Of a DNA stretch of 64,000 nt, positions 22,031 to 56,170 are shown one piece after another. Within the stretch, counting starts at the first letter, position 1; every line of letters starts with the position of its first letter. The notes beneath the pieces are model-generated. The model had not been told where the DNA came from. It ran no database searches and saw only the letters and a program-made list of their open reading frames with translations. Made by a program: the position numbers and the translations under genes. The stretch comes from Takakia lepidozioides (lineage: Eukaryota > Plantae > Bryophyta), in NCBI GenBank assembly GCA_030704615.1, contig CM060732.1, forward strand, positions 37,386,001 to 37,450,000, written 5' to 3'.

Positions 22031-22563
22031 AGAGGGAGAGAGAGGAGAGAGAGGGAGAGATCAGGAAACAAAAAGAAAAAGAGGAAGGTGGGGGGGGGGG
22101 GGAGTGACTGTGCAGCAGCTGCTCAGTCACTCTCTCCCCCCCCCCACCTTTTTGTTTTTTCTTTGTTGCCCCCTCTCTCCCTCTCCCTCCCTCTGGAAAC
22201 TGGGTTTATGGAATGGTTGTCCCAACTTCCATCTTTGAAAAAATTGAAAAATTGGGTTGCAGGGAATTTTAGATGTTTTTCATCCAGAATATTTTTATTT
22301 TTTTTCCCTAAGTGAAACATTTCTTCACTAATACCTGTGAGGTTTTGCTTCATCCGGACATCAACCCGGAATATATTGATTGCAAAATCCCCATCAGTAT
22401 TTATTTTATTTTTTTCAATCCAACCTGGATGAAAAAAGGACTTATTTAGGCATAAAGTTATTTTTTAGACACAAAAAAGAACTTTTTCCTATTCTAGACA
22501 TAGAAATAACTTTCTGTTACCTATTTTGGTCTTGTGCCTATTTGAGACAACCCCTTACAGCAG

Positions 22564-22570
22564 TATATAA
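22564..22570 (+). promoter_or_regulatory. TATA box (AGTATATAAG) upstream of hammerhead
   Basis: The same 10-mer lies 47-50 nt upstream of the hammerhead core in all four copies (22564+, 23794-, 53408+, 55556-). Confidence 0.65.
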
Positions 22571-22608
22571 GCTGGGGGTGAGGCTCTGTGTACCTCATTC
22601 CATTTCTC

Positions 22609-22650
22609 TCCCACTGATGAGCTCACTTGTTGAGCGAAACTAGTCTGGGA
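22609..22650 (+). ncRNA. minimal type I hammerhead ribozyme (intact core)
   Basis: UCCCA-CUGAUGA-GCUCA(CUUGU)UGAGC-GAAA-CUAG-UC/UGGGA: stem I, conserved core, stem II, palindromic ACUAGU stem III; GUC cleavage after 22645. Confidence 0.9.
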
Positions 22651-23055
22651 CTTTATAGAGATTGGCTACTATTCTGCATCTAAGGGTTCTTGTCTCAATG
22701 TTTCTTCTATGCTGTTGAGCCTTAGGTTTGCTATCATCTATTGCATGCTTTAAACTCATTCTCGAGTGTTGCGTGTTAGATGAGCATCTAAGTCGTTCTC
22801 TACTATGTCTATTCTCTAGCAAAAGAGATAGGGTACTATTCTCCTGTCATCTCAGTGAAATAGTTTCAATCACATATATTTGTCTATTTTTTTGCAGTTG
22901 CATTTAGAACATCAACATCACTTCTTTTTAGCTTTTTGTCTCTCTGGATCAACGCTATTAGTTTTGATTCCCAGGATCTAGATATCTACAAGTTTTTTCA
23001 AGGCGCCCATACCCGCCCCCCCCCCTAAAAACTTTTTGGTTCGGATTGTGTTCTT

Positions 23056-24754
23056 GAGCACCTTGGTTAAAAGAATGAAGATCAACATCTGCCTCCATTA
23101 CGTGAAGGTGATTAAAGATGTGTTGCAGCTAACACTGTAAGAAAGTTTAGGGTTCACAGAAAGTGTCAAAACAAATGTTTAGGGTTTAGGGTTTACAGAA
23201 AGTGTCGAAACAAATGTAGCAGTACAACGCGGATGCACCGGGTGCAAGATAAACACAATCCGTGCAAACAAGTTTTAGGGGGGGCAGTTATGCACCCCTG
23301 GAAAAATTTCAGATCCTGTGGATCAAACCTAAAAGGAGAGATCCTGAGAGACAGGAAACTAGAATAGAAGGTGTCCTGAAATACAACTGCAAACGTGCAA
23401 GAGGCAAAAGTGCGTATGAGAACTATTTCACTGGATGCACATGATAATAGAACCCTATCTCTGTTTTGCAAGAGAATGGACACACTAGGAACAACTTAGA
23501 TGCAGATCTCACATGCGCTATTCGAGAAGGAGTTTATGGCATGCACTATCGTATAGACACAGAACACATAACAATGCAATGATCTAAAGCAGGGGATACA
23601 AACGCATCTAAAACTCGACTTCGAAAAACTCAACAACTTCAAAGGGTAAGATCACGAGGCAAGACCACGAGGCAAGATCATGCAAAGTAGTGAAGCCAAA
23701 TCTTTATAAACCCCAGACTAGTTTCGCTCAGCACGTGAGCTCATCAGTGGGAAAGAAAAGGAATGAGATACGAACCCCACCCCCCGCTTATATACTACTA
23801 GGAGTGAACTGCCTCGTGTGGACAATCTTCCAGTGGATGTCTCGTGAGGAGAAAAACCATCCAACAAATGTCTCGGTGGGAGAAAATCATCCAGTGGATG
23901 AAAACAAGTTCTCGACAAGAGAGAACCAGATCCAAAGAATAAAAATCATCCAAATAGTTAATTGCATATCTCTCAAATACAACTAATTTCATGAGTTTAT
24001 GACTATGCAACAACCAATTATGGTGAAGTTAGAGCTTGTTGTGCAAAGTCATAAGGGCTGAAACCACTTCGAGAGGAACGTAAAACTCGTAAGAGCTTTG
24101 CACATGCAGACCATCGCGCAACCATCGTCTTGCTAAAGCCTGCAGCTGTGTTGTCCTGAACGTGTCCAACCACGATCCTCACCTTCCGATCTCCAAGAAG
24201 AAACACGGCTCGGTCTTTGTATTGTTGCCTCATCAAATGAATGAGCACCTTGGTCAAAAGAATGAAGATCAACATCTGCCTCCATTACGTGAAGGTAATT
24301 AACGATCAGTTGCAGCTAACACTGTAAGAAAGTTTAGGGTTCACAGAAAGTGTCAAAACAAATGTAGTAGTACAACGCGGATGCACCGGGTGCAAGATAA
24401 ACACATTCCGTGCAAACAAGTTTTAGGGGAGCCAGTTATGCATCCCTGGAAAAATTTCAGATCCTATGGATCAAACCTGAAAGGAGAGATCCTAAGAGAC
24501 AGGAAACTAGAATAGAAGTATGCGAGGTGTCCTGAAATACAACTGCAAACCTATGCAAGAGGCAAAAGTGCGTATGAGAACTATTTCACTGGATGCACAG
24601 GAGAATAGAACCCTATCTCTGTTTTGCAAGAGAATGGACACACTAGAAACAACTTAGATGCAGATCTCACATGCGCTACTCGAGAGGGAGTTTATGGCAT
24701 GCATTATCGTATAGACACAGAGCACATAACAATGCAATGATCTAAAACAGGGGA
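23056..24754 (-). mobile_element. tandem array (~1.5 units) of hammerhead/telomeric-repeat family X, unit ~1.15-1.19 kb
   Basis: 23056-23176 repeats at ~24244-24362, and 23195-23595 repeats at ~24343-24754; TTTAGGG repeats at the 23177 junction; interrupted by an LTR at 24755. Confidence 0.85.
23711..23752 (-). ncRNA. minimal type I hammerhead ribozyme (intact core)
   Basis: Minus strand reads UCCCA-CUGAUGA-GCUCA(CGUGC)UGAGC-GAAA-CUAG-UC/UGGGG; cleavage between 23716 and 23715. Confidence 0.9.
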
Positions 24755-26711
24755 TGTCAATGACGAGAACATGACTAAACACAAACAAGAGATAAGACTA
24801 GAGGTACAAGGCTAGACAAGAAGTCAAGGTCGGCGTGGCTGAATGCACGATGAGTAAATATGAATCAAGATGATATTTATAACAATGAACAAGAGTACAA
24901 GATATTGGAACACAACTTGAATACTGGAATGCTGGAAACTAGACTTGAGTACCAGATACTGGAAACTGGGCTAGAGTACTGGGAACTGGACTGGAGTACT
25001 GGAAACTGGAAACAAGAGTAGCTTGAACTGGTGTTGGAGAGACTGAAGAGTGTCCAGTCTCGTCTCCTATATATACTAGTTACTAAGAAGTTTCCCTAAG
25101 AAGCTGCCCCTATGGAGGTTTCTTGCTGGAGAAATTTCCAAGATTAAACAAAGGTTTCTTGATGAAGAAGCTTCCTTAAACAAAGGAGGTATCTTGATGG
25201 AGAAGTTTCCTCCAAAGGAAGCTTCCTGAGTAGTTTCCCAAGTTACTCTTGGTAATTTGGTAAACTCCCGGTAATTTGGTAAGTAATGGTAAATTATGGT
25301 AGATCATGATAAATATCGGTAAGTCATGGTAACTTCTGGTAACATGATAACTTGGTAACTTCTGGTATTTACTCCTTATAAGTTCCTCTGGGCTATGTCC
25401 GTGACATCACCCCCTCCTCTAGCGCAGAGTTCCTCGAGGAGCGGTAAAATCTTGGACTTGCTTAGAGTTGGAGAAAATCCAAAATCCGGCGAATGGTACT
25501 TGCCAAGCATTCGGCTCTTCGTTCTTGACTCAAATGATTTATAGGTCCCTGCAACCATCGATAGTGTCTAACACCTTGAACTTGGGACCACGCAGTGATT
25601 TGAGCATTCTGATTTTCGAAGTTGCCTTCAAACATGATTTCGTTGTCATCTGGGTCCGAAGCCTCAACTCCAACAGGATTATCAGACTTCGAGTAGGCTC
25701 CACTTGCTGTCGTACGGGGTTCAGACGAGGAAGTACGCGTCACATTGGTGGCCCATCGTCTCGAGAGCATCGGCATGATGTTGAAGGTCGTGAGAGTCGG
25801 AACGGTTGATCTGGTAGCTGGGTAAGCGACAACTCCAATGTATCTGGTTCCTGTGACTCCATACTGCCAATACAAGATGCAGGAGTGTTGAAGTGTAGCT
25901 ATATATAGATGTGTGGTGCTCATCCCTCCTTAGCATGTATCAGATAAATTGAATGTGGAGTCTTCACCTTGAAGCTAACTTGGCTGACATCATCGTTGAG
26001 ACGTCTTATTGACGTGTAGCTCGGCTTAGCTGGATATCGTTGATGATGAAACTCTTGGACTTTGTCAGATGCATTGACGAGGTTGGATGAAGGTTTCCAC
26101 GTTCGTTCGCTGATGTCGTAGTCTTTCCAATGTACGAAATATTCAAGACGTTTATACTTGATGCGAGAGAGGACTTCGTCGACTTCATACTCAATTTCCT
26201 GATTAACTTCGATTGGTGGAGGTGGTACGGAGACTCTCCCTGGAATATTCGATGGATGATACAACTCCAATAATGAAACATGAAAGACTGGATGGATGCG
26301 CATACTTCGTGGGAGTTCAAGCCGAAAACTGACCGGATTTATTTGTCGAATAATTTTGAATGGGCCCAGGCGTTGATAATCCAACTTCCTTGATGGTCGC
26401 GAGGTTTGTATGTCCCGTCGAAGAAGCCACACACGATCTCCAACCTTGAACTGGGGTTGGAGTTGGCGACGTGATCTGCATACTCTTGTATTGTTTTTTA
26501 GCTTCTGCGAGGTGAAATGTAAGCTCCTTGTGAATCGTAGCAAGATGAGTAGCAAGGTAGCAAGGTTTCTTGCAGCAGGGCTTTTCAACAGTCTTCATGT
26601 GGAAAGGGTTTGCTCGAGGATGATGACCATAATTGGAGAAAAATGGAGTTTGTTGGGTCGAAGAATGTATAGTGTTGTTGTAGGCAAACTCAGTCAATGA
26701 CAGAAGGTCCG
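24755..26711 (-). mobile_element. Ty3/Gypsy chromovirus 3' remnant (integrase C-terminus, chromodomain, PPT, 3' LTR)
   Basis: LTR 24755-25406 with TGTCA..TGACA termini; PPT AGAGGAGGGGG adjacent on the minus strand; AYNN/TPFF, LGPFKI, HPVFHVSLL and chromodomain EYEVDEVL..YFVHWKDY. Confidence 0.88.
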
Positions 26712-27460
26712 TGTCGCGCTGCTTTTACTCACCCATCCCTTCGCTATCCGAGGTGGGAACTCCAAGATAGAAGAGTTGGAAATCTCTAAGCACTCAGCCC
26801 GTTCAGAACAATCAGTCATGACCTACAGCTAGTGTATCATGGGGGTGTTTCCTATTTGTACTCCTTCCGCATTATGTTAGCGAGTTTCCCTTACTATCTG
26901 CAATTAAGTATCAGTTTGCTTCAGAAATCTATCAAGTTCATCCATTCATTCCACAGCTTCACTCAGGGTCTCTTACACAGTGTGAGTATGAAGTATGTAT
27001 CAGATTAATATTATCAAGTATCAGGCTGAAGCCATGGTGTCTCTATTCTACTACATTACAACTCTACTTCTTGCATTCAGCCAGTATAACAGATCGTTTT
27101 CCTCCTACTCCGTGCTCTCCCTCTTTCCTCAGAGATGCGCTCTCCGCTTCATTTCCAAGTTTGATCCCCACGAAGTGATCTCCTCCAGTCCCCGCTCCTC
27201 GTTATCTTCCTTTCCGTGGTTTCTAACCGTTTCCTCACTAACCGTCATCCGTGAACAACATGTTCCATTCGCAGATGTTGTTCCCCACAGTCGTTCCCTG
27301 TCCTGCTATCCGTTCTCTATGGTTGTGAAGCTGTGTCAAGCTGTGTGAAAATTGTGACTGGCTGTGGCCTGTGTTGGGCGTGGTGAGGGCTGTGTCGAGC
27401 TTGTGATGGCTGTGTCGGTGTGTCGGACTTGACGGGCTGTGTGTTGGCTGTGACGGGGTG

Positions 27461-30400
27461 TGTCGCGGCCCTTTGCCTTGAGGGCAGGGGGTCGGGACAC
27501 ATGAGGGGCTGCCCCTGTGGTGGGGGCAGCGGCAGCGATAGGTATGGGGGGCTGAAGCACCCTTGAGTGCCCAAGACACCCAAGGAGGCGGAGGCGCTCA
27601 CTAGGTGGAGCCCCGCACACCGGGTTGCGGTGGAGGTGGCTCCACAAGGTGGTGTGGTAGCTTAGTGGGACTTAGTGGGGTGGCATAGGACTCACCATGG
27701 GGTGGAGACCTCGAGGTGGGAGTCGTGGGGAGTCTTGGGACTCATCACGGTCCATTGGGGCGCGGTGAGTGGGCCAAGACTCACCGCGACTCACCACCGG
27801 GAGTCGAGGGTTTTCGTGGTGGTGGTTCGCCATAAAATGGCATGGCTGGTTATGAAACCCCGCGGACAGCTACAGAAGTATATATAGGGAGTAGTAACCC
27901 GAGAACGGTGCAAGCCCGTTGGTGACCAAAACTAGTGAGTAAGCGAGCGAGCCGGAAAGCGACCAAAGAGTGGGGAGCTGTTCCGGACTGCCATCTACAA
28001 AGGGAATTCTCCTAGTCCCAAATAGGTGGAGGGTTTAGAGGGAAGCGGAAGGGGACCGTTATGTCCCGGTGAGCAGCCGAACTCCAAGTTGGCCCGGCGG
28101 CCAGGTTGGGAGTCAGGCGCGCGCATCAAAGCGAGTAACTATGACTTGAAGGGGAGTTTACCGAACTGAGGTGTGCGACATTTGGTATCAGAGCTTAGAG
28201 TTCAGTACGCGATCGTCCTTGGGATTGGCCTCATCATGGGGTCGGGCAAGCCGAAGCGAAAGCGGAACGGCCCAAAAGATGATGATCCCGGTGAGCCCGA
28301 TGGGGGCGACGTGTCACCGAGGCGGCCGTTTGAGGAAGCGATTAATGTTTCCGAAAACGAGGCCGCTCAGGAGCGGGAGGAATCCGAGGAGTCGGAGCCC
28401 GAGGAATCTTTGAGAGCTCCGACAAACCAAGAGATGCCTCCCATGCCGGCAGCCTTTTGGGAAGGGTTGTTGGCGCAGTTTGGCGGGACGTTGAAAGACG
28501 TGTTGAAGGCGGCTAATGCCACTTCCACCAAGGCAAAGTTTAAGGTGAAGCCTAAGGAACCCGGCACCTTCGAGGGCGTTCGAAACCGGAAGGCACTCAA
28601 CACCTGGCTCCTGGAGCTAGAGCAGTACTTCCGGGCGGCCAAGTTGAGTGACGAGGATCGGGTGGAAGTGGCTCCCACCTATTTGAGGGGCTATGCTCAA
28701 CAATGGTGGCAGAAACGCCTTCACGACCGAGGCCCAAGCCCGGAAACCTTGAACTGGAGTGAGTTCAAGGAATTGATGAAGAGACAGTTTGTGCCCCTCA
28801 ACGCATCCTGGCTTGCCCGGGACAAGATGAGGAATTTGAAGCAAACAGATGACATTCGGGGGTATGTCCAGGCTTTCAATGTGCTGTTGCTCGAAGTCGC
28901 GGACATGGCAGAACCAGAAATGGTCTTCAACTTTGTGGCGGGACTGGCCCCATGGGCTAGGCGGAAGTTGGAGGAGAAGCCACCCAAGACTTTGAACGAG
29001 GCAATTGAGAGAGCTGAATGTTTCTCGGATGTCCCTAGGGGTGAGAGACAAGGCCGTACGGAGCTGAACCACAAGAAGACCGGCGGGAAGGTGACTCCTC
29101 CCGACCGGAAAAGAAGTGGGATAGGCCACGCGGCGAAAATGGCACGTGGAAATCGAAGGGAGGTCCTTCACACGTCAAGGCGGCACCCGGTGCTTCGAAA
29201 GGAAAAGCGGGTGGAGGAGCGACTTATGGCGGACAGAAGGCGACCTTGATGGAGTGTGTTTCAATTGCGGGGAGCCCGGGCACATGGCCAAGAAGTGCAC
29301 GAAGCCCCGGCAATTGAACATGACTCGGGCGACCACGGAGCTGTCGGAAGATACCATCAGTCGCTTGGTGGAAGCGGTGGTCGCCAGGACTTGCAAGGTA
29401 GGCAAATTTTCTTGTGAGTTGTATCAGGAAACTGGCGCCTTACGAAAGGGAGTCAGTTATTGTTCGTGGATGGGATAATATCCGGAACTAATGTGTCGTT
29501 GTTGGTGGACACAGGAGCGTCGCACTCCTTCATGACGCCGGCGGCGGCGCGAAAGTTGGGACTCCCGACAAGTGACGTGGGGGCCTCTATTGAGGTGCGC
29601 TCTGCCAAAGGAGAACCTCAGTTGGCGACAAGGTTGGCGTTTGATGTTCTCTTCAACTGGGGTTGGGAGGGACGTGAGAACTTCACTATCTGCGAGATCG
29701 ATGGAGTGGATCTCATTTTGGGAATGACCTTTTTGAGCAAATCCGGAGCGGTCATAGATGGCCGCAAGAGAGTAGTCACGCTGCCATGTGGGAATGGTGG
29801 CGAGGTTTTACGAGTGTCGGAAACGCCCAAATCCGTGGGAGGGCGAATAAACCTTCTATCAGCAAAGGAGTGGGCCGTGGAGGAGCACACGAGTCCCAGT
29901 TTTTGCTTTACATTAGAGAAGTGAAAGGAGAAGGCGATGGGGAGCCGAGCCCAGATTGGATCAAGGGGATTTTGGAGAAATACCAGGATGTGATGCCGGA
30001 GGATTTACCAAGCGGCTTGCCACCGCGAAGAGGAGTTGACCACAAAAATTGAGGTGATACCGGGATCGGAACCGCCTGCCAAGGCGCCCTACCGGTTGAG
30101 CCACAAAGAGTTGGTCGAGCTGAAGACTCAGCTCAAAGATCTAATGTCAAAGGGGTACATCCGGCCGAGTAAGTCACCTTACGGAGCCCCGGTGCTATTT
30201 GCAGACAAGAAGGATGGGACGCTGCGGATGTGTGTCGATTACAGGGCTCTGAATAAGGTGACTATCAAAAACCGGTACCCTTTGCCAAGGATCGACGACC
30301 TCTTCGATCGGTTGGCAGGAGCGAAGTATTTCAGCCGGATCGACTTGCGCTCCGGCTATCACCAAATTCGGGGGTGGCGAAGGAGATGAGGAGAAGACCG

Positions 30401-33400
30401 CGTGCAGGACAAGGTATGGTTCATATGAGTTCTTGGTGATGCCTTTTGGGCTCACCAATGCACCAGCGACATTTAGCACGCTGATGAACAGCCTTTTCCA
30501 GGAGTGGTTGGATGACTTTGTGATCGTGTACATCGACGACATCTTGTGTACTCGAAAACAAAGGAGGAGCACCTGGAGCACCTCAAAAGGGTGTTCCAAA
30601 AATTGCGAGAAGGGAAGCTGTATGCCAAAGCTTCAAAGTGCGAATTCGGGGTCACAAAAGTGGAGTTCTTGGGGCACGTGATTACACAGGATGGGATCAA
30701 AATGGATGACAGAAAGGTGAGGGCGATCTTGGACTGGGAGCCTCCGACTTCGGTCCCGGGAGTGCGATCCTTCCTAGGACTCGCCTCCTATTACCGGAAG
30801 TATGTGAGAAATTTCGCCAAGATCGCGGGGCCGCTGTCGGACCTTCTGTGTAAATCCAAAGTCTGGGTATGGAACACATTTTGTGGCCAAGCTTTTGCTG
30901 AATTGAAGCAGCGGATGACGGAAGCTCCAGTCTTAAAAATCCCGGAGTTCGATCGTCCGTTTGAGATTCATACAGATGCATCGGACTTCGCAATTGGGGT
31001 GTACTTATGCAAGATGGACGTCCAGTGGCTTACGAAAGTAAGAAACTGAATGAAGTGGAGCGACGGTGGCCGACGCACGAAAAAGAGATGAAGGCGGTGG
31101 TACATTGCCTTGAACTCTGGCGCCACTATGTTGGTTCCAACCCAGTGAAGGTGTTCACGGACAATGTCACGGTGAAGTATTTTGCCACGCAGCCCAAGTT
31201 GTCCCCAAAACAACTTAGGTGGCAAGATACTTTGGCAGTGTTCGACGTGGATATCCAGTACAAACCGGGACGGGACAATGTGGTGGCCGATGCTTTAAGT
31301 AGAAAGCAAGTAGCTCTTGTTGGTGTACAAGGGCGAGACGGCGCTCCAAAGGAAGATCCGGAAGGCTTGCCGGAAGGATGAGCTGGCAAAGTGCGTGATG
31401 CAGAACTTGAGAATGGGGGTTAAATCGCAGTTCCACTTGCAAAACGGACTGCTTGTATAAGCAAAAACGTCTCTATGTGCCAAAGGGAGGGATCAGGGAT
31501 AGTCTCTTGAGAGAATGCCATGATAGCCCGCTTGCGGGCCACGGTGGAGCCAAGCGCACTGCGGCACTCTTGAAGAAAGAGTATTTCTGGCCCAAACTGA
31601 GGGAGGAGGCAGAGGAGTATGTTAAGACATGCACCACATGCCAACAAAACCGGAGCGAGTATAAAAAGCAAGCGGGGCTGTTACAACCCTTGCCGATTCC
31701 AGAGGGGACTTGGGAAAGCGTCTCGATGGATTTTTGACTGCTATGCCGCTGTCAAAAGGATTCGATGCAATCATGGTGGTGGTAGATAGGTTCAGTAAAA
31801 TGGCCCATTTCATCCCCACCAAGGAGACGGCAACTGCGCAGGAGACAGGGCGACTTTACTTCGCCCACGTCTTAAAGCATCATGGAGTCCCGAAGGATAT
31901 TGTCTCGGACCGCGATCCAAAGTTTACGAGTAAATTCTGGAGAGCACTTTGGAAGAAGATGGGGACGAGGCTGAAGATGAGCACCGCCTTCCGACCTACG
32001 ACGGACGGCCAAACGGAAAGAGTGAATTCCGTAGTGAAGCAATTCTTGCGGAATTACGTGTCGGCAGACCAATCAGACTGGATGGAACACTTAGACGCGG
32101 CAGAGTTTGTTATAATAACACAGAACACTCCGCGACGGGAGTTTCCCCTTTGTGTTGGTCTATGGAAAAGCACCTCTGGTGCCGACAAGTTGGGCCGCCC
32201 AGGACGTTGAGGAACCGGCAGTAGCGGCGGTACTGGAAGAACGCGAGCGTTTGTTGAAGCGCAAAGTACAACATTGCCAAAGCTAGGAAACGGTATGAAA
32301 GGCAGGCGAATCGGAAGCGGAGGGAAGTGAAGTTTGAGGCAGGCACAGAGGTCTGGTTGAACATCAAGAATTTTCGACTACCTCCGGAAATGAGTCCGAA
32401 GTTCGTACCTCCGTATATGCGGGTCCCTTTCGCATTCGGAGGGTTATGAATGAGGATGTGTATGAATGGAGCTGCCAGCAAACAGCAAGGTGCACCCAGT
32501 AGTATTCCATGTCTCCCTTTTGAAGCCTTACTTCAAAGATGAAGCACGTCCGAATCGGCAGCAAGTGTTGCGTCCGCCACCTATGCTGTTGGATCATGAA
32601 AATGAACCCGAGTACGAGGTGGAGGCAATACTTAAGTCGAGGAGGTTCAAGAACCGAGAAACGGAGTATCTCGTCAAATGGAAGGGCTATCATCTTGTGA
32701 GGCATCTTGGGTGCGTGCCTCAGAAATGGGAAACGCATCCGAGGCAGTTGCAGCGTTCGAAGGGCGACCTCAAAAGCGGAAGAAGCGTTGATGGGACATC
32801 AACCTTGGAGCGTGGGGGAGGAAATGCATGCTTAGCCCGGTTTAGCTAGCTCAGGAATCCGATTGCAAAAACTTGTATTGTAAAAAAAATTTGTGATAAA
32901 GGAAATGGGTTCCAAATATTGTGCGTCCTATTGTGTTTGGAATGGTGATGCATGGGTGGTGTTGGCTGGTGTGTAGAATGCATGCTAGCTTACAAAAGTG
33001 GGAGAGGTAAATTGGGTTAATCGTGTGTTTGCGCAGTGCCGAAATCGGGTGACTCCCATCCAAGGGGCAAGGAAACTTGCGCCTTATTTGGGAGTTCAAG
33101 TGCTAGTGCGCACCTGGCGCGTGCGCGTACTATAACTGCGCTACCGAGGGGGTTGCCTTGTAGTGCGGGCTAACGCGGAAGCTACGTGCTTCCGTTCACG
33201 TACTATAATCGTGTAGCCTCGGGACGAAGTCGTAGTGCGGCTTCGGCGTGTTCCCGTACCTCAGGCCAGCATTCCAAGGCGGACCCAATTGTAGTGATTG
33301 GGGCACGGTTGGTTCAAGGTTATCTTCCTAGTCAAAGAGGGTTCCAGGTGAACCCTTGCTCAAGGTGATGCCAAAAGCGGCATCATGAGCGATCGCAAGC

Positions 33401-34417
33401 AATGTTGTTGCAGTAAGGCGATTCGATCCTCGGGGAGGATCGTTCCTTGGCCTTGAAGTAGGCCAAGAAGAGTGCACTGGGAGGAGCTGGAGAGAGGCTC
33501 CACCCTTGGCCGGGACTTGGAGGAAGTCGGCCGAACTAGCTAGTGGAGAGTGGAGTCAAGTGTGGGGTTTGGTTCTTTGCCATGGGACGCCATGGTACGG
33601 AAACAAACTCCTTGATGTGGGACGCCACAACTTGGATGTTCGTTTCTACAAAATGGACAAGTCGATGAGGACATCGACTCCCTGTTGGTAGGGGTGTGTG
33701 TCGCGGCCCTTTGCCTTGAGGGCAGGGGGTCGAGACACATGAGGGGCTGCCCCTGTGGTGGGGGCAGCGGCAGCGATAGGTATGGGGGGCTGAAGCACCC
33801 TTGAGTGCCCAAGGCACCCAAGGAGGCGGAGGCGCTCACTAGGTGGAGCCCGCACACCGGGTTGCGGTGGAGGTGGCTCCACAAGGGGTGGTGGTAGCTT
33901 AGTGGGACTTAGTGGGGGTGGCATAGGACTCACCATGGGTGGAGACCTCGAGGTGGGAGTCGTGGGGAGTTGGGACTCATCACGGTCCATTGGGGCCGCG
34001 GTGAGTGGGCCAAGACTCACCGCGACTCACCACCGGGAGTCGAGGGTTTTCGTGGTGGTTCGCCATAAAATGGCATGGCTGGTTATGAAACCCCCGCGGA
34101 CAGCTACAGAAGTATATATAGGGAGTAGTAACCCCGAGAACGGTGCAAGCCCGTTGGTGACCAAAAACTAGTGAGTAAGCGAGCGAGCCGGAAAGCGACC
34201 AAAGAGTGGGAGCTGTTCCGGACTGCCATCTACCAAAGGGAATTCTCCTAGTCCCAAATAGGTGGAGGGTTTAGAGGGAAGCGGAAGGGGACCGTTATGT
34301 CCCGGTGAGCAGCCGAAACTCCAAGTTGGCCCGGCGGCCAGGTTGGGAGTCAGGCGCGCGCATCAAAGCGAGTAACTATGACTTGAAGGGGAGTTTACCG
34401 AACTGAGGTGTGCGACA
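27461..34417 (+). mobile_element. near-complete Ty3/Gypsy chromovirus LTR retrotransposon
   Basis: LTRs 27461-28180 and 33699-34417 (TGTCGC..GCGACA); PBS TGGTATCAGAGC (tRNA-iMet) at 28183; full gag-pol domain set. Confidence 0.95.
28236..32792 (+). CDS. Gag-Pol polyprotein (frameshifted in this assembly)
   Basis: Gag, [14 protein letters not shown] knuckle, protease LVDTGAS, RT ([21 protein letters not shown]), RNase H (TDASD), integrase ([23 protein letters not shown]), chromodomain [16 protein letters not shown]. Confidence 0.9.
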
Positions 34418-34424
34418 CTGTGTA

Positions 34425-39160: not shown

Positions 39161-39164
39161 GCTT

Positions 39165-42100: not shown

Positions 42101-45100
42101 GATAATGCTTCACCCAGCTCTATATCTATGAACTCTCCTTCTAATTGGGAAGCGAACTGGTGGGACAGCAGGGTAGGGGTGTTTATCAAACATGATGTTT
42201 GTTCTTCTGTTGGTTGCAGGGAGTCGAGGTCACTATGAAAAAGATTATGGAAGTGCCTGCCAGCCAGCATGGCCATGGCCTTTGGTGTAGAAGTTGAAGT
42301 GCCTGATGGCTGTTCAATGAGCTCAGAAATTGTTTGAGAGGCACGTCTCAATCTTGTTTTGTCGAAAAAATATTTATTCATTTTTTTCTCCTTTTGTGGT
42401 CCAGTTGACACCCGCCTGCAATGTCCACTTCCTCTCCTGGATTTTGTGATGAATGTCAAGGTTGTTTCTGGCTTGGACATATGTACGGTATGTGTCTTCA
42501 TCACAACAGGTGGATTCTATTTTTGATTGACAAACTTTGAGGCATTTGTTTAAGGCTTTGACCTTCCTCTTTCTGATGCTTGCTAGTTCCTGACTCACCC
42601 TCTGACTTTCAATATTGACAGCCTTCAGCTTGGCCAGGAAGAGATGCGTAGGGTTCAGGAGGTCACTTCCCGCCTGAGTCCAAGCCCTTAGCAGTCCTTG
42701 CTTGAAGCTTGGCAGCTTAAGGATGAGGTTATTTATTTTGTAAATGCCTCTACCCCTTCTGTAAGAGTCTGGTAGGGTTATGGAGAGGGTAATTGGTGCT
42801 TGGTCAAAGCATAAGGGTATTGGTTCTCGAGGGGCTCTCTTAGCATATTGAACTAAGTCAAGGGAAAGGTAAGCTCTATCAAGACGAGCCATACTTAGAT
42901 CTGCTAGAGAACGGTTATTGGACCAGGTAAAGGTGATGTTTGATGACTGTCCAAAGATTGGTACTGCTTCTGTGAGGTTGTGTGTTTGCATGCAGTTGAA
43001 CCACTGGTCCATTTCTTCTGGGTTTGAGGTAAATAACCCCGCGCCTCTTCTATCCTCTTGCATCTCCACCATATTAAAATCTCCGGACAATATCCAACTA
43101 TCTATTGAAGGTTGTTCCCTCATTTTTGTGTTCAGAGTGTTCCAAAATTTTGCTCTGTCAGTAGAATCGTTGGGTGCATAAATATTCACCAGCCCAATTG
43201 GACCTGTTGAGTTGGGTAGGGATAAGACACAAAATTGCAATCTTCTGGGGAGCCAGGTTTCCTGCGTAGTGAGGAACGGTTGAATGGTAAGTGAAAGAAG
43301 TATTGCAATACCTCCTTTCGTACCCGTGGAAGTGGGTTTCCATAAGGAGTTAGCCAATGGCCATAGAAAATCAGTGAGGCTATCTATTTTCCCATGATCT
43401 AGTTTATGTTGCTGAAGGAATATGATGGAATGATTTGCAAGGAAGGGAGTCAGCCAGGTTTTGTTTTTCAGCCTTTGTAGAAAAGCTGGGTCTACTCCCA
43501 ACCCTCTTATATCATGAATGGAGGTTAAAGATCATTGGCAAGTCATGGTAGGCTGAGGCTGACAGTCTCATTTGATAGCCTAGAAGTGTGATAGAAGAAT
43601 TTAACCTTACTGTCTCTTGGTCGTAGGGAATTTTTCCAGACATAATTGTCCGGGGGCTTGCGAGTTTTATTCTGGATGAGTATGAAAATCCCTCTTGGTT
43701 TTGTGTTTTTGGGTAGGTCATGGGATGAAAGGAATTGTTCTGCAGACACTGTGGATATGGTTATAGATAAAACCAAGGCTTCAGTCGGGAAGAACATCAC
43801 ATTGAAAATATCGTTAAAACCAGGGTATCTCTCACTGATTGAGCCATCGGAGGGAAGAGTTCCAGAGGGTATGTTTTCTGGCAAATCAAACACTGGTAGC
43901 CTATGTCTGACCTGCTTCCCCCCCACGTATTTCTCTTTCTCGCATAATATCTAGTATCTAGCAGGGTTCCCAGATAAGACCAGATAAATGAAACAGGGTG
44001 AGAGAGAGGATGGTACCTTGTTTGGGGAAGGTGGAGAGGAGGGAGTTTAGACCTTGGGTGGAGAAGTCACTTGAGAGTTCGGCAGCGAGTTAGCCTGGGT
44101 TGTGTCAATGATTGTTGGGGAGGATAATTGTTTTGCTCGTTTCACCGAGTCCATCATGTTGTGATTCTCCTCTTGCGTAGAAGATTCCACCTGGGAGTCT
44201 GAGGAAGAGTGAGAGTGATCTGTCCATCTGGTGCAATTAATATGATCTCTTGTCCTTTGAACCTTCATTCTGTAATTTCCCCATCCACTTCAGAGTCCAA
44301 GTGGGCTCCCAGCAACTGAAACCCATTTATCAGGGTATCCTGGTTTCGAATTTGCAAACTGTGACTCCCTCTGGGGGCTGAGAGCAGGTCCTCATAAGTC
44401 CAGATAGCCTCTATCGGTGGAGGCGAGGCATAAATTTCTACATCCTCCATGAGAGCTAGAATGTGGGTTGAAGGTTTGACACTAAGTCCAGGATAGTCTT
44501 CCATGTATGCCCCCATTTTGGTGAGGGATGAAAATGAATAATGTTTTTGTTGCTTGAGGAAAAATTGCTGAATTTTCCCCTTGAACAGAATTTGCGAATT
44601 GGTATTGGGTGGGTTGGTTTGCAGGAAATGCTTGAGATCTGCTAATGTTATCCATAAAGATTCGACTGTTTTCCAGTCGTCCGATGTAATGAGGATAGCC
44701 GGGGGTTTGCTTTTTCGAAAGATCAAGGGTGTCACACATGCTGCCTTCGGGGAGTCGACAATTTCCAGTGCTGAGCATCCCACCAAGTTTAGGTGTGGGA
44801 ATGAGCCGATTTGGAGACAGTTGTTAGCAAACCTAGAATTACAAGCGATTCCAATGGTGATTTTGGGGAAGGAATTACTAGTAGGGAGGGTCAATTTGAC
44901 TACTCTTGGGGGTGAGCTATCCTGATGCTTTCCTTTTCCTTGGCCGATAGATGCCCCCTGCTGCTGTGTTTCCGTGAGTTTCCCTTTCCCTTTTGTGATG
45001 GCATTCATTTGTTGCTGGTGGGCCATCACCTCTTCTTGCATCGGATCCTTGGGTGTCTCCTCCCTTCCGGGGCTTTGCCATGATCTGAGCTGTAGAGGGT

Positions 45101-46150
45101 CATTTGGTGTTTTGTGCCGGGTTTGTTGCCCTCCTGGAATTGTTGCAGGCTCAGGTTGTGGTGTGGGAGACTGTAATTCCTGCCAGTGCTCCGCTGTTGA
45201 TTTTGGGCCCCCTCCTTGTTCCTGTCTCCGTGGTTTGGATGGGGTCATGGGCTGGGTTCGCTTGCGCTTGGCTGCCAGGCAGTCGATTCTGAGATGTCGC
45301 AACTGGCCAACAAAGGTGTCGGCTCAGGGGGATCAGGCGGGCATGGATCTGGCTCTGGGGGGGTTGGGGGTCAAAGACAGCCAAGCATCCAAGATAAGAC
45401 CCGAAATGGTTTGCAATGTCTGCCAAGTTCACCAAGTACTGGTCTGGGATCTTTGGGACTGAGATGATGTGGGGGCCCCACAGCTTTCCGTTCCTGTTCC
45501 CCATCCTAGGAGACCATGGAAATATGTTGACATTAAACCCCCTGGTATGAGGGTTAAATAGCAAAGCCTCATTAGCAGCCTCTTTTGTTTCAAAGATGAT
45601 AGACAAAAACCCCCTTCCTTTGGCATGGCAGGTAGCTGCCTCAGTTCTCCATTACCGCCAAGGTGTCTGATGGCCCAATCCCTGACTGTTGCCCTATCAA
45701 CTTTTTTCCCCGGAAAGTGAATGAGGATACCTGTCTCTTCCATTGTTGTGACTCTCCTTTGCAGTTCCGAGATGTTCATGTTGATCATGGGGTAGTCCTT
45801 GTCCAGATCATCTTGATTAAGAGCGCTCTCTTCCTCCCAGTCTACTGGTGGTTCCTCCAAAATTGGAGGGTTCGAAAAGTTTGGAATGAAGGAGTTTAAC
45901 CTGGGCATTTTGAGAAGTGGTTGGGGAGGGGAGAGAGGGTTGGTGGGAATGGGAGGGGAGGGATGTCTTACTGAACCACTGGCAGAAGCTATCCTGGATC
46001 GAGCTTGGTGTGCCATAAAGAAGCCCGTACCAGACGACGGGGTGGATCTTCTGTGCTGACTCTGCTGCCCTCTGGTGTTCCCCCGAGTCGCCAACTTCTC
46101 ATTGTTACGCAGCTGGTTGCTTCCGGGAGCCATAGTTAACAAAACAGAAG
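39165..46150 (-). mobile_element. L1-type LINE, near full length, degenerate
   Basis: ORF1 (RRM-like IFPWSP, knuckle remnant HLRIDC); endonuclease (NIYAPN, GDFN, ARLDRAY); RT (KSPGIDG, YRPITLLN, QGCPLSP, FVDD); zf-RVT (CACC..ESIEHCLLSC). Several frameshifts. Confidence 0.92.
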
Positions 46151-46718
46151 CGTTTTAAGGACTCCGCTGGTTGTGAGAGATATGGATCTTAAGAGAGGGG
46201 TTGGCGGAAAAAATAGAGGAGAGGGGTATAGGCGGGAAACGTGCTGTAGAAAGCGAATGGCTTAGAAGCTAAAGACGGCTGTGGTGGGAGGATTAGGGAT
46301 GATACAGGTAGCAAAGATGGAGATGAAAGGGAGCAGGATGTTAGGATGAACACTGTTGAAGAAAGTATTGAAAGAGAACCAAACAAAAACTTGTAATGTG
46401 CATATCATTTGAAAGCTAAGCTTGGGAGTATTTGCTATGTGGTGTAAGTAAAGCAAGCAGGAAGTCGATAGGATATGATAGAGATGGAAGAAGTTTTCAG
46501 ATGACCGTTGGAGGTTGTCTCGCAGCCTCGCCATCGCGCCTCCCTGAAGTTTCATGTTTCAACCTTTTTGGTTTCTCTTCTTACGATTTGGTTTTCATGT
46601 TTTAAATATTTATTGATTTTATTTCATTAAAATCAGGACACCCAGGGCCCAGCACGGATGGTGCAGGGGGAGAGATTGTATAACGGAGGTAAGCTGGCTG
46701 GGAGGTGGCGCACTGACC

Positions 46719-51284: not shown

Positions 51285-52789
51285 TTCATGCGGACGTTCC
51301 ATTGACACCAACATTTTATGGGGAGTGCATTGGAGGAGGGGGCGTCCCGTGTCTTTCTACTACTGTACTCAAACAGGATGACAGTGTTGTGCAAATGGTG
51401 AGCAGAGCCTATTTTGCAAAGGTGGCAAAAACAGCCCAAATTATGCATGCTTTGACCCTCTTGGTCCAAGACCGAAATGTACTACAGAATTCTTGCCAAT
51501 CTAACTGATGTATGTGCTGATGAAGTCTCAAAAAGTATTCATTATACTGTGCTAGCTAGTGTCGTGATTGAAAGATGAGTGCAGAAACATGACATTCTTT
51601 CACTGTTGAGTAGATACTGACATGATTGTTTGGAACCATTCACTTCAACTTCAGTTGGTCCTTCATTTAAGTACTGTGAACTGAATAAGAGACCACACTT
51701 CAGATCTTGGTGAAGATTGTGACAACAATGGCTGGTCAAGATGTGCGACCATGCTGCATAGAGAAGTTTCATTACAACTCAACTTGGCAGCGTTAAAGAG
51801 TGTTGAGGTGCACTGAGGGAGATGTCAGGCTATAGATTGGGTCATTGCACTCCAAATACGTTAGGCAAGAGTTTGTATCAAGAAACAAGTGGAAATTGTG
51901 GATGAACCAAACAGGGGATGATACCAGTGGTGAAGATGGTTTGTGCAAGTCCAATCCGGAAACCCAATGCAAGTTTGAATGCATAGCAAACCTCTATTTG
52001 TGCTCCCACATGATTGTGACTAGACATAGCACAAAGACAAGGCTGAAAATGAATTGTTACCTTGAAAATAAATTCAATGTGGCACTTCCAACCACAAATC
52101 TGCTGGTGGATACCAAGTTTGGCGATCTATTTGGACCGCTTGGTGCTCTCTTCGGAATCACCTTTCGCAAACCAAACCAGATAGTTTCGAGGAAGTCCTC
52201 AGACAACGTTTATTTGGTAACTTCAATCGTGACTCAGAAGCGGTGGGCCTTTTGGTAGTCCGTGGGGTTCTCTCATTTACTTCACTTCTGGGATGAAGTG
52301 GCTGAGACCCTGATCTCCCCTGCTGCAGCGGCGTATAATGGTCTTACCACCGGGAGAGTCACTTTGGGTTGGGACACGGTTATCGGAACCTGCTTCCGTG
52401 GTGGTCTCGCCTTGTATCCCAGCCTCACAAGTCTTGCGCACATGACCGAAAAAACGGGGCTGATCCGTTGGAAAAGTGGGCTGATCTGCCCCCCTTCCCC
52501 GCGCTGATAGCGATATTCACCCAACGCGATTCGCTCAGCCTCCAAGCTGATCCGCCGGATAAAAGTAGATGAAAAAAAATAACCTTTCAGATGAAAAACA
52601 AAAGTGATTTTTCATGTTAAAACAGATGTTAGCTTGATCTTTGCCGTGCACACATCATACTCAACAGTACGGAAGTGCACGAAGTACACGACATGGAAGC
52701 TTCCCTACCTTAAGCATGGAGAGGGTGTGTAACAAATGCTCAAGGGGGTGGCATATGGGATGCTTGACACCGCCACTTGAGGAGGTTTA

Positions 52790-53077
52790 GGGTGAAATAG
52801 TCTCAGTCATACACTTTAGTCATTTGCATGTCTTTGCAATTGCACTTTAGAACATATCAACATCACTCATATCCTACCTATGTGTCTTCAGAATCATCTC
52901 TTTGAGTTTTTCTGTAGATATTTGAAGTTTTTTTCGGAGCATATAACCGGCCTTCCTAAAAACTTTTTAGTCTGTACTGAGTTACTATTGCACCCGGTGC
53001 ATTCGCGCAATTTGTTGTACAGCTATATTTATAATTCCAATCTTTTGTAGACCCTAAACCCTAAACCCTAAACCCTA
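52790..53077 (+). mobile_element. 5'-truncated diverged copy of family X ending in (CCCTAAA)3.7
   Basis: GTGAAATAG..CCTAAAACTT..TTGCACCCGGTGCAT aligns with X; telomeric repeats at 53052-53077. Confidence 0.7.
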
Positions 53078-53450
53078 GACTCTACGAGTTGCTTCAGCAA
53101 GTCCCGGAGCTTCGGTTTCTTTTTCGAGCGATGATTTGTTGGAGGAATCCGCGAAAGCTGAGTTCATTCCTAGTTAAATCTAGAATGATAGGATGATTTT
53201 GTAGTGCAAATGTCCCTAGCATTATTAATTTTGCCTCTTTGATAGCCCTAGTATTGATGTTAAAGTCAAAGGGTTCCAACAATTAATTTGGATAATTGAC
53301 TAATTAATGTAGTCTTCACTTGGAGGCTAAATTAGTGCTTTAGTGGCATTATTATTGCCTTGGGAATTATCCCATATCGTTTGCACATAGTGAGGGTGCT
53401 TTTCTAGTATATAAGGATAGGCTTGGCTCTTAGGACTTCATCTCTTGGTG

Positions 53451-53493
53451 TTCCACTGGTGAGCTTGAGCAATCAAGCGAAACTTGTTTGGGA
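53451..53493 (+). ncRNA. variant minimal type I hammerhead (core A6G, GUU triplet)
   Basis: UUCCA-CUGGUGA-GCUUGA(GCAA)UCAAGC-GAAA-CUUG-UU/UGGGA; stem II differs from X but pairing is preserved. Confidence 0.75.
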
Positions 53494-54345
53494 ATAAAAC
53501 ACCTTAACTCTTTTTGTGTCTCCACACTTAGAGAAGTCGAGAGTTTAGTCCTTGCCCGCCCAGGCAACTTGGATCGAAAGAATGCTCGGCTCCAAAGGGA
53601 ATCCCAACCCTTGGATATTTCTGAGGCTTTTTTTCTTTCCGAAGCACGGGCGTATAGAGCCTTCCGTTTGGCGCCATCTTAGCCACCACTTACAATGGGG
53701 AAGGTGGTTGGGGATATATGGTAGTTGTGTCAGGCAAGCTAATTTAGCCCCGACTACACGGTTCCCCTGTCATACGCCCGATGGTCGGAGAGAAGGGACT
53801 TGGTTGATCCTCCCTCGAGTTCATCTCGAGCGATCAGAGGATTATGGGCATGCGCAAGCCTATGCCGACCTAACCTTCTCGTCGATGACCTTATGCGGTA
53901 ATCCCTCCCATTCTTCCTTAGAGGTACGAACCTCTTTTTGAAGGTGGGGCATATAAGTTTTCCAACTAGGGGTTGAGACTTGACCCTATGTTTGTGAGTG
54001 CCTTGAGCGCATGCTTGCCCATAGTGAGCAAGATTTTTTGTCGCTAAACAAGGAGAAGCAAACATAAAAAAGCTTACGGTTGGAGCGAAAGTGCCTCATT
54101 CTTAAATTAGAGAACCTTATCTCATGAGGGCGGGAGTCCTTGCATAAGACATAATAGTCTTATAGCATCCCTTTAGGCACGATAGGCGCACTTTGTATGC
54201 ATTTGTCTTGGTTTCCATTGCATTTGTATTTGGGTCCGAACCGGCCCCCCTTAAAATTTACTGTGTATTTTTTCATTATTTTTTCTACTTTTTGTTACCT
54301 TTGCAAGCCTTTGTTGACCACCCTAAACCCTAAATTCTTTTTTCC

Positions 54346-54929
54346 ATGGCGGAACTAGCATGTAACAAACATCCATGTCCTAGCTTAGGCGTTGGCCTTT
54401 TTCATGCATCCGCATCTTCTTCTTCTAGCATGGATATCTCCATTCCTCCCCCTTTGCTTGCATTTGTGCATACATCGGTCAAGGAATTCAAAAGTCTTAG
54501 GCATGAGCATGAAAAGACTTCCAAGTACCTTCAAAAATTGCGAGTGCAATTCGAAGAAGGCACCATACCCAACTCCCTTAGAATGAGTCCTCCTAAACTT
54601 CAAATATGAGATCCTGAGGCCCAATCCGTCCTTGATGCGAGCCTGGCCGAATGCACAACCGCATATCAGATCAAGTGCTTTGAAGCACTCATCAAAGCCC
54701 AAGAATCTCGACTTGCTAGCTTGACCCACAAGCTCGAGCAATCGAAACCGGTCTTTGAGACTCGCCTCTCGGATTTGATTTCGCCTTTACGATCCTTAAA
54801 TTTGATAGGTGACAAGTCTAAGTCTTCCATTGAGTTGTGGCATCTTCATCGGCATCTTCATCTTAACAATCTCTTTGTTGCTCATGTAGATGCATTTCTC
54901 ATTCACAAACAACTTTCCGACGTCAGCAA
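54346..54929 (+). pseudogene. truncated ORF resembling the N-terminal/ORF1 region of Penelope-like elements
   Basis: About 195 codons with one in-frame TGA (54607); YLQKLRVQFEEGTIPNSLR followed by a helical/coiled-coil-like stretch; cut by telomeric repeats at 54930. Confidence 0.45.
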
Positions 54930-56170
54930 GGGTTTAGGGTTTAGGGTTCAGGGTTCACATAAAGTGTCAAAACAAATATAGCAGTACAACGCGGATGCAC
55001 CGGGTGCAAAATAAACACAATCCGTGCAAACAAGTTTTAGGGGGGGCAGTTATGCACCCCTGGAAAAATTTCAAATCCTGTGGATCAAACCTGAAAGGAG
55101 AGATCCTGAGAGACAAGAAACTATAATAGAAGTATGCGAGGTGTCCTGAAATGCAACTGCAAACCTATGCAAGAGGCAAAAGTGCATATGAGAACTATTT
55201 CACTAGATGCACAAGAGAATAGAACCCTATCTCTGTTTTGCAAGAGAATGGACACACTAAGAACAACTTAGATGCAGATCTCACATGCGCTATTCGAGAG
55301 GGAGTTTATGGCGTGCACTATCGTATAGACACAGAGCACATAACAATGCAATGATCTAAAGCAGGAGATACAAACGCATCTAAAACTCGACAACTTCGAA
55401 AAACTCAACAACTTCAAAGGGTGAGACCACGAGGCAAGATCATGCAAAGTAGTGAAGCCAAATCTTTATAAACCCCAGACTAGTTTCGCTCAGCACGTGA
55501 GCTCATTAGTGGGAAAAAAAAGGAATGAAATACAAACCCCACCCCCCGCTTATATACTACTAGGATTGAACTGCCTCGTGAGGACAAACTTCCAGTGGAT
55601 GTCTCACGAGGAGAAAAACCAACCAACAAATGTCTCGTATGGAGAAAATCGTTCAAAAAGTCTCGGTGGGAGAAAGTCATCTAGTGGATGAAAACAAGTT
55701 CTCGACAAGAGAGAACCAGATCCAAAGAATAAAAATCAACCAAATAGTCAATTGTATATATCTCAAATACAACTAACTCTGTGAATTTATAACCATGCAA
55801 CAATCAATTATGTTGAAGTTAGAGCATGTTGTGCAAAGTCGTAAGGGCTGAAACCACTTCGAAAAGAACGCAAAACTCGTAAGAGCTTTGCACACGCAGA
55901 CCATCGCGCAACCATCGTCTTGCTAAAGCCTGCAGCTGTGTTGTCCTGAACGTGTCCAACCACGATCCCCACCTTCCGACCTCCAAGAAGAAACACGGCT
56001 CGGTCTTCATATTGTTGCCTCATCAAATGAATGAGCACCTTGGTCAAAAGAATGAAGATCAATATTTGCCTCCATTACGTGAAGGTGATTAAAGATGTGT
56101 TGCAGCTAACACTGTAAGAAAGTTTAGGGTTCACAAAAAGTGTCAAAACAAATGTAGCAATACAACGGGG
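54930..56170 (-). mobile_element. full unit (+~45 nt) of family X with telomeric repeats at the left junction
   Basis: High similarity to 23177-24375; GGGTTCAC..AAAGTGTCAAAACAAAT recurs at 54951 and 56127 (1176 bp period). Confidence 0.9.
55473..55514 (-). ncRNA. hammerhead ribozyme copy with G5A core mutation (predicted inactive)
   Basis: Identical to 23711-23752 except CUGAUGA to CUAAUGA (position 55507). Confidence 0.85.

Follow-up and report, generated by a model that had tools for sequence, protein, structure and literature searches.

A repeated unit of 1,166–1,194 nt, here called X, occurs at two loci in a 64,000-nt stretch of the Takakia lepidozioides genome (assembly GCA_030704615.1, contig CM060732.1, positions 37,386,001 to 37,450,000; hereafter the window). 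It carries a TATA box, a hammerhead ribozyme motif and a terminal run of CCCTAAA, the reverse complement of the telomere unit found in the window (TTTAGGG), and it has no reverse transcriptase. How, then, could such a unit have multiplied? Judging by the DNA of the window and of public contigs that carry relatives (labelled "L" below), X is probably a non-coding, non-autonomous partner of the endonuclease-less (Coprina/Athena-like) Penelope-like elements (PLEs) of this plant.

With the full X unit as query (the reverse complement of 23178–24343; 1166 nt), blastn mapped seven pieces in the window (Table 1). Two are full minus-strand units, X1 and X2, with a mutual identity of 90%; three are 5′-truncated minus-strand pieces; and two, on the plus strand, belong to a diverged subfamily, X′, that is 66–68% identical to X. 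Repeat finding gave a matching picture, with direct repeats spaced by 1148–1187 nt at 23055–24755 (locus 1) and by 1176 nt at 54946–56172 (locus 2), and a 60-nt inverted pair, 92% complementary, that consists of two hammerheads face to face. A sequence-only reading of this DNA had described tandem and inverted copies of a ~1.15–1.19 kb unit at two loci, 22540–24754 and 52790–56170, and had treated them as one family. The unit, its arrangement and the existence of two loci are borne out. The limits needed correction, locus 1 reaching ~24831 and locus 2 spanning 52786–56172, and membership of X holds for the minus-strand copies, the plus-strand copies forming the distinct subfamily X′. Locus 1 and locus 2 have unrelated flanking sequences and are thus independent insertions. 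Despite these unrelated flanks, both loci (22559–24831 and 52792–56172) show the same tail-to-tail layout, with X′ (+) on the left and the X array (−) on the right. At the left edge of locus 2 a single G-strand TTTAGGG (52786–52792) separates the sense truncated X′ from a Cys/His-rich open frame that is broken (CNKCSRGWHMGCLTPPLEE).

Each X unit begins with a 545-nt 5′ region, followed by the TATA box and the hammerhead; the CCCTAAA run lies 525 nt from the predicted cleavage site, close to the ~520 nt noted earlier. The box AGTATATAAG, present in X1, X2, X′ and the family Y described below, lies 47–50 nt ahead of the hammerhead core in X and X′. The window contains 21 telomeric 7-mers where ~8 are expected, the majority in or at X, X′ and Y elements, and a search for CCCTAAACCCTAAA that tolerated one mismatch gave 9 hits, the expectation being 0.00. 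The 3′ end of every element is a CCCTAAA run, and copies are truncated on the 5′ side.

If X encodes no enzyme, a source of reverse transcriptase must be sought elsewhere, and the element designated Y is informative in this respect. Y shares the motif order of X and leads into an open reading frame (ORF), as the sequence-only reading had recognised; its description as a diverged non-coding relative of X did not hold, because Y starts inside a reverse-transcriptase gene. As its matches to ORF2 proteins and to a public 4,053-nt contig (L001) show, Y is a 5′-truncated copy of an autonomous endonuclease-less PLE, comprising the C-terminus of ORF2 and the 3′ end; the ORF into which it leads belongs to the next copy in the chain, as that copy's ORF1. 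A search of 1.8 billion protein representatives matched the second ORF1 piece at 96% identity to P0001, the 350-aa ORF1 protein of L001. On L001 the order is ORF2 end, TATA, intact hammerhead, tail, CCCTAAACCCTAAA, ORF1 (350 aa) and ORF2 (>541 aa); the autonomous PLE with TATA-hammerhead-CCCTAAA ends that the earlier reading had proposed to look for is thus found (ORF1 96% identical).

By its motifs (PADKN, GRPICS, FDVESLYPSI, GTAMGS and YIDDGF) and its homologues, ORF2 is a PLE-type reverse transcriptase. It has 235 homologues, the nearest named being those of Cryptomeria, Ginkgo and Selaginella (~49% identity, 580–630 aa, without GIY-YIG). The ORF2 stop lies 43 codons past a T-L-N-P motif, with no GIY-YIG endonuclease; distant homologues do possess GIY-YIG, and full-length relatives of 600–626 aa are without PF01541. 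The DNA behind T-L-N-P is itself an in-frame telomere-like stretch (ACC CTA AAC CCT, 43 codons before the stop; L001:49–62, L002:2112–2135, window 53065–53079). The motif is kept at the protein level in Cryptomeria and other relatives and is absent in L007; the window Y is truncated exactly at this stretch and fused there to a (CCCTAAA)3 run.

Copies of X, X′ and the PLE are joined by telomeric repeats into chains (junctions at 53052–53079, 54321–54334, 23178–23191 and 54931–54953). The ORF1 that follows Y is ended at 54930 by TTTAGGG repeats, after which comes the inverted X unit. Earlier, X had been proposed to be a non-autonomous, PLE-mobilised retrozyme-like family; its non-coding nature and its telomere-repeat-joined chains with an endonuclease-less PLE support that proposal in part, and the appeal to Y as a second non-coding family has to be removed from it.

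Table 1. Features of the two loci in the window; reverse-strand motifs are given from high to low coordinate
Feature	Position	Strand	Remarks
X′ copy	22559..23052	+	unit 545–1092; begins at TATA box; 3′ side cut at minus-strand X array; blastn 66%
AGTATATAAG box of X′	22562..22571	+	50 nt before hammerhead core
X′ hammerhead	22609..22650	+	intact core CUGAUGA...GAAA; stem III ACUAGU; predicted GUC cleavage site
X unit start, first 102 nt	23055..23156	-	unit 1–102; cut at contact with X′; blastn 95% identity
X tail fragment, last ~33 nt	23145..23178	-	CCCTAAAC end; sits between two units
Full unit X1, 1166 nt	23178..24343	-	AGTATATAAG box 23796–23787; hammerhead 23752–23711, intact core; CCCTAAACCCTAAA 23191–23178
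5′-truncated X copy	24332..24831	-	unit 665–1160; good alignment from 24755; single CCCTAAAC at X1 junction
Lone TTTAGGG	52786..52792	+	5′ boundary of truncated X′; orientation contrary to chain model
5′-truncated X′ copy	52792..53079	+	unit 913–1166 (blastn match 52792–53065); ends (CCCTAAA)3.5
Y, 3′ 1.27 kb of autonomous endonuclease-less PLE	53065..54334	+	96% identical to L001
Last 43 codons of ORF2 in Y	53065..53193	+	tblastn to P0007 70% identity, E 5e-14; C-terminus profile E 4e-19
Y TATA (AGTATATAAG)	53406..53415	+	part of Y 3′ untranslated region
Y hammerhead	53451..53493	+	core CUGGUGA; GUU site
CCCTAAACCCTAAA at Y 3′ end	54321..54334	+	follows Y tail of 833 nt
PLE ORF1, 5′ 195 codons, next copy	54346..54930	+	in-frame TGA 54607–54609; cut at 54930; 93% to P0001 residues 1–191
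G-strand telomeric repeats, TTTAGGG x2 and variant	54931..54953	+	link broken ORF1 to 3′ end of inverted X
Full unit X2, 1194 nt	54940..56133	-	AGTATATAAG box 55558–55549; hammerhead 55514–55473, CUAAUGA (G5 is A)
Last 51 nt of X unit	56122..56172	-	unit 1110–1160; 5′ side joined to unrelated GC-rich sequence

The same module accompanies PLE genes on other contigs. The general layout of the autonomous elements is ORF1, ORF2 (no endonuclease) and a 3′ untranslated region (UTR) with a TATA box, a minimal type I hammerhead that follows at ~45–53 nt, then several hundred nucleotides of tail and (CCCTAAA)n. In L002–L004 (53% reverse-transcriptase identity) the ORF2 stop is followed by ~205 nt, TATAAG, ~45 nt, a hammerhead with an ACUAGU helix III, a 426-nt tail, AAACCCTAAACC and the start of ORF1. 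Two of the three are circular permutations of each other that close into a 3.9-kb cycle, which implies either a tandem array or a circle. In L005, TATA and a decayed hammerhead are followed by telomere-like sequence in degenerate form and by ORF1. L007 has an intact hammerhead upstream of ORF2; its helix III is ACAUGU, and its core lies 53 nt after a TATA box. A search of one Selaginella locus found no hammerhead within 5 kb at E ≤1.

L008 carries a tail that is 67–69% identical to that of Y over ~460 nt (Y 53600–54120 against L008:173–642), although ORF1 is only ~50% identical between the two families. The tail is thus conserved within the Y/L008 lineage, which suggests a conserved, possibly structured, non-coding RNA domain.

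Does the ribozyme motif itself bear the marks of function? Stem I (UCCCA/UGGGR), CUGAUGA, a stem II of 5–6 bp, GAA, AC-UA-GU and a C at the predicted cleavage site follow one another in the order of the type I topology. Stem III consists of two pairs and a 2-nt loop (ACUAGU), a loop that is sterically forbidden in a single molecule; ACUAGU being palindromic, a six-pair helix III would be possible between two copies. A palindromic helix III, ACUAGU or ACAUGU, is found in X, X′, L002, L005 and L007, and Y has the non-palindromic ACUUGU. A double-hammerhead dimer is calculated at −25.8 kcal/mol, compared with −24.0 for two monomers, and is not the predicted optimum.

The core CTGATGAG-N13-CGAAAC has 2 exact occurrences in the window, where 0.01 are expected. 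With the core defined as CUGANGA...GAAA and H at position 17, it is intact in X′ (22614), X1 (23747), L001, L002 and L007 and mutated in X2, the window Y and L005: X2 reads CTAATGAG (CUAAUGA, G5 to A) and Y reads CTGGTGAG (CUGGUGA, A6 to G). The fold was examined in an alignment of eight elements from six families, with 13 pairs in three helices. The helices are paired in 93% of cells, as against 16–45% when partners are slid; four pairs have changed on both sides, and none of 500 shuffles reaches the covariation score. Between X and X′ the hammerhead windows are 85–93% identical and the remaining sequence 23–85%; for this pair of subfamilies, the contrast goes the way that the sequence-only reading required of the core and its flanks across genomic copies. 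Judged by topology, palindrome and compensatory change, the motif is a true minimal hammerhead of type I, its stem III palindromic as had been claimed and its fold kept across families by paired substitutions.

One could nonetheless suppose that the combination of motifs is coincidental and that X is a subtelomere-type satellite with no RNA role. The scan with curated Rfam models, proposed earlier as a check, accords with this, there being no hammerhead match at the gathering threshold. Set against it are chance expectations near zero for both the core and the telomeric dimer, the covariation of the stems across families and the presence of the module with a PLE reverse-transcriptase gene in independent contigs; we regard coincidence as very improbable.

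A TATA-like box lies 47–53 nt before the core in seven of the eight elements, TATAAG taking its place ~45 nt before the core in L002. A box resembling the upstream sequence element (USE; TCCCACATCG) is found in Y and L001, where TCCCATATCG starts 38 nt before the TATA box does; the best USE candidates of X, X′, L002, L005 and L007 have 3–4 mismatches. Every element has at least two runs of five or more T between the TATA box and the tail. Because of these T runs, and because the USE is convincing only in Y and L001, a polymerase II promoter is favoured over a small nuclear RNA-type polymerase III promoter as the source of a full-length RNA template. The start of the X RNA predicted after cleavage (UGGGGUUUA; 23707–23715, −) complements its own CCCUAAA tail (23178–23191, −), and the minimum-energy fold pairs the two ends; this pairing is not conserved in X′ or Y.

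What X shares with the 3′ UTRs of the autonomous elements is confined to the TATA-hammerhead module (~88 nt, 65–68% identity) and the telomeric tail. We considered whether X might be a deletion derivative of the Y family and rejected this, there being no similarity beyond those two parts. X thus consists of a 545-nt 5′ region, the shared module, a tail peculiar to X and the telomeric repeats. Neither the whole unit nor this 5′ region gave a match to Pfam, to 126 PLE proteins by tblastn, to the ORF2 C-terminus profile or to the protein atlas, in line with the earlier statement that X lacks a reverse transcriptase. Both full units contain an open frame of 84–85 codons (24018–24275, −; 55808–56062, −) with no database match. 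It differs between them by 5 synonymous and 7 non-synonymous substitutions, and X2 is without its ATG, on which grounds it offers no evidence for coding. By these measures X is non-coding.

The homology of the X module to autonomous 3′ UTRs allows a different history, in which X was never independently mobile: tandem 3′-UTR (pseudo-long terminal repeat) arrays of an autonomous PLE would have lost their coding part by recombination, and the leftover would have spread by segmental duplication. Partial tandems and inverted copies are typical of PLEs (PMC8557442), and just two loci are visible in the window. Segmental duplication sits poorly, however, with unrelated flanks and different internal structures at the two loci, and with unit boundaries that are the same at both; nor does X contain a trace of the ORF2 C-terminus by the profile that finds Y at E 4e-19. 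We therefore judge this history improbable and retain the view of X as a non-autonomous partner of the PLEs.

The layout of the elements, the conservation of the fold, the junctions and an autonomous partner are all observed, and together they allow a mechanism to be proposed. In a head-to-tail array, transcription would begin ~10–25 nt before stem I, directed by the TATA box that each unit has in its 3′ part, and the RNA would continue through the telomeric tail into the next unit. A comparable arrangement exists in HeT-A of Drosophila telomeres, where each element of a head-to-tail array is driven by the promoter at the 3′ end of its neighbour; HeT-A differs from X in being LINE-like (LINE, long interspersed nuclear element), poly(A)-tailed and without a ribozyme. 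The hammerhead, its stem III forming only by pairing with a second copy, would then remove the promoter-proximal leader. The CCCUAAA stretch would anneal to the TTTAGGG 3′ overhang of a chromosome end or a healed break, and the PLE reverse transcriptase, acting in trans, would extend the annealed end to give 5′-truncated or longer-than-unit copies joined by telomeric repeats. Cleavage, priming and mobilisation in trans are steps that we infer from the DNA. One junction is arranged as it would be if a G-strand 3′ end had served as primer at the CCCUAAA of an RNA: the broken ORF1 is capped by TTTAGGG, and antisense X follows, beginning at the X 3′ end.

Since the promoter lies inside the unit, copying of the 545-nt 5′ region would require a template that is circular, multimeric or a read-through product. 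In keeping with such a template, the junctions between units have one templated CCCTAAAC, and terminal junctions have 2–3.5 repeats. The same facts could be read as the signature of a true retrozyme, whose hammerhead-to-hammerhead monomers are ligated to 1.17-kb circles; starting from the internal CCCUAAA, a PLE reverse transcriptase would travel round these circles and produce longer-than-unit tandems. The internal promoter and the 545 nt upstream of it, the single CCCTAAAC between units as opposed to the 2–3.5 repeats elsewhere, arrays longer than one unit, the closed cycle into which the related autonomous element (L002–L004) assembles and an X tail that folds somewhat better than shuffles (z = −2.6) would all be accommodated. 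But a tandem DNA array transcribed as a multimer yields the same geometry without circles. Adjacent units differ by ~5%, the same as copies from different loci, which old arrays or separate templates fit equally well; without an outgroup the sister test of neighbours is uninformative. We consider circles of this kind unlikely.

The partnership of X with the PLEs can be extended into a broader proposal, that land plants possess a telomere-targeted counterpart of the animal retrozymes, running from promoter to dimer-dependent hammerhead, to a trimmed, possibly circular, 1.17-kb RNA, to telomere annealing and to copying by the telomerase-related PLE reverse transcriptase, thereby building or patching chromosome ends. 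This we put forward tentatively, as less likely than not.

Several observations weigh against the interpretation of X as a mobile partner of telomere-associated PLEs. Two of the five hammerhead-bearing pieces in the window are substituted at an essential core position (G5 or A6), and copies are 5–8% divergent from each other, with no recent activity apparent; on both counts the window copies are old. The best Rfam matches, to HH9 at a relaxed threshold, score 19.8 and 16.4 bits where the gathering threshold is 52, a low score that is due to the missing helix III. Beyond the shared parts, the X tail is unmatched in Y, L002, L005, L007 and L008, so that no partner family with an X-type tail exists among them. 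The junction at 52786 has its telomeric repeat in an orientation that the chain model does not predict. Finally, a position at a chromosome end is not visible for either locus: both are surrounded by Ty3, LINE and other ordinary repeats, and the window has no long telomere tract. An exact-pattern scan of metagenome contigs found no further X copies, and a looser hammerhead pattern matched only two unrelated contigs there.

How does the system compare with those already described? Rotifers, fungi, protists and Selaginella are established hosts of endonuclease-less PLEs that combine hammerheads with reverse-complement telomeric repeats (PMC8557442, PMC6431247, PMC4209133, PMC13159263). Coprina and Athena/Terminons (Gladyshev & Arkhipova 2007, via PMC8557442 and PMC6431247) resemble Y and L001 in having a reverse transcriptase without GIY-YIG, 3′ reverse-complement telomeric repeats and a hammerhead. 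They also have head-to-tail chains of 5′-truncated copies with short telomeric stretches between them, as found here, and two ORFs, the first basic and coiled-coil-like, as in the autonomous element (PMC8557442, PMC6431247). In rotifer Terminons (PMC6431247) the telomeric repeats are immediately 3′ of the hammerhead, whereas here they lie 426–833 nt downstream and the hammerhead is directly behind TATA. The endonuclease-deficient PLEs have ORFs; X has none. The only plant case in the literature searched is that of the Selaginella PLEs, which are reported to have canonical rather than minimal hammerheads (PMC4209133, PMC12477314).

Minimal dimeric hammerheads have been reported from metazoan PLEs (PMC4209133; Lunse et al. 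2017, via PMC7761336), and share with the present ones the type I topology, a very short palindromic helix III and a predicted need for dimerisation; the hosts here are plant endonuclease-less PLEs and their passenger X. The animal non-LTR retrozymes (LTR, long terminal repeat; PMC7229834; bioRxiv 10.64898/2026.07.22.740005) are likewise non-coding tandem units with type I hammerheads and a weak helix III, for which an origin in PLE pseudo-LTRs and mobilisation by PLEs have been proposed (same sources). Their units are of 150–400 nt, without a telomeric tail and restricted to animals, whereas X is 1.17 kb long, telomere-tailed and found in a plant; circular RNA has been demonstrated for them.

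The LTR retrozymes of plants (PMC4918200) are, like X, non-autonomous plant elements with hammerheads, and have a promoter in the ribozyme-bearing repeat (PMC9695139). Theirs, however, are type III hammerheads in true LTRs, accompanied by a primer-binding site, a polypurine tract and target-site duplications, with mobilisation by Ty3-type elements (PMC4918200), features that X does not have; with its type I topology and its lack of LTR structure, the unit does not look like part of an LTR element, an identity that would have told against the earlier proposal. Non-autonomous Chlamys elements such as MRC1 of Chlamydomonas (PMC8557442) are green-lineage PLE derivatives with pseudo-LTRs, head-to-tail insertions and a partner-like 3′ end, but their partners have an endonuclease and they show no canonical hammerhead and no telomeric tail (PMC8557442).

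Full-text literature searches found no description of a protein-free, telomere-tailed element with a type I hammerhead in plants. A 2025 review describes telomere-associated retroelements as rare in plants and has Selaginella as its sole PLE example (PMC12477314), and the role of the minimal PLE hammerheads has been called a mystery (PMC7761336). The present locus adds a plant TATA box at a fixed distance before the ribozyme, across diverged families and in both the autonomous elements and a protein-free passenger. It gives the minimal hammerheads a testable role, the 5′ trimming of transcripts begun in the 3′ UTR of an upstream neighbour, and would carry the association of PLEs with non-coding ribozyme elements beyond animals, into plants. 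Where a broken gene has been capped by TTTAGGG and then extended by these elements, it may be read as a record of chromosome healing. Should the telomere-targeted proposal be true, a ribozyme-bearing non-coding RNA would help to build or patch chromosome ends.

The surroundings of the two loci are transposon-rich plant DNA, in which domain annotation recognises Ty3/chromovirus gag and integrase, a LINE and a kinase pseudogene. A Ty3-type LTR retrotransposon occupies 27455–34233, its LTRs of 544–551 bp (27455–27998 and 33692–34233) being 96.7% identical and its gag ORF lying at 28173–29249. The LINE-type element at 39211–46142 (−) encodes an apurinic-type endonuclease, a reverse transcriptase and a zf-RVT domain and has no relation to the PLE system. 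A protein-kinase domain at 15440–16684 (+) is broken by a stop into two ORFs; among named proteins a lycophyte one matches it best, at 50% identity, and searches with a kinase exon and a gag ORF gave no named relative that is close. A near-perfect 73-nt palindrome made up of G13/C runs and (GA)n lies shortly before locus 1, at 22044–22190. Beyond the terminal X fragment of locus 2, a GC-rich stretch with A/T runs (56173–56990) contains CCCTAAACCCTAAG at 56833–56820 (−) together with degenerate G-rich telomere-like repeats, possibly the relic of an older chromosome-end tract.

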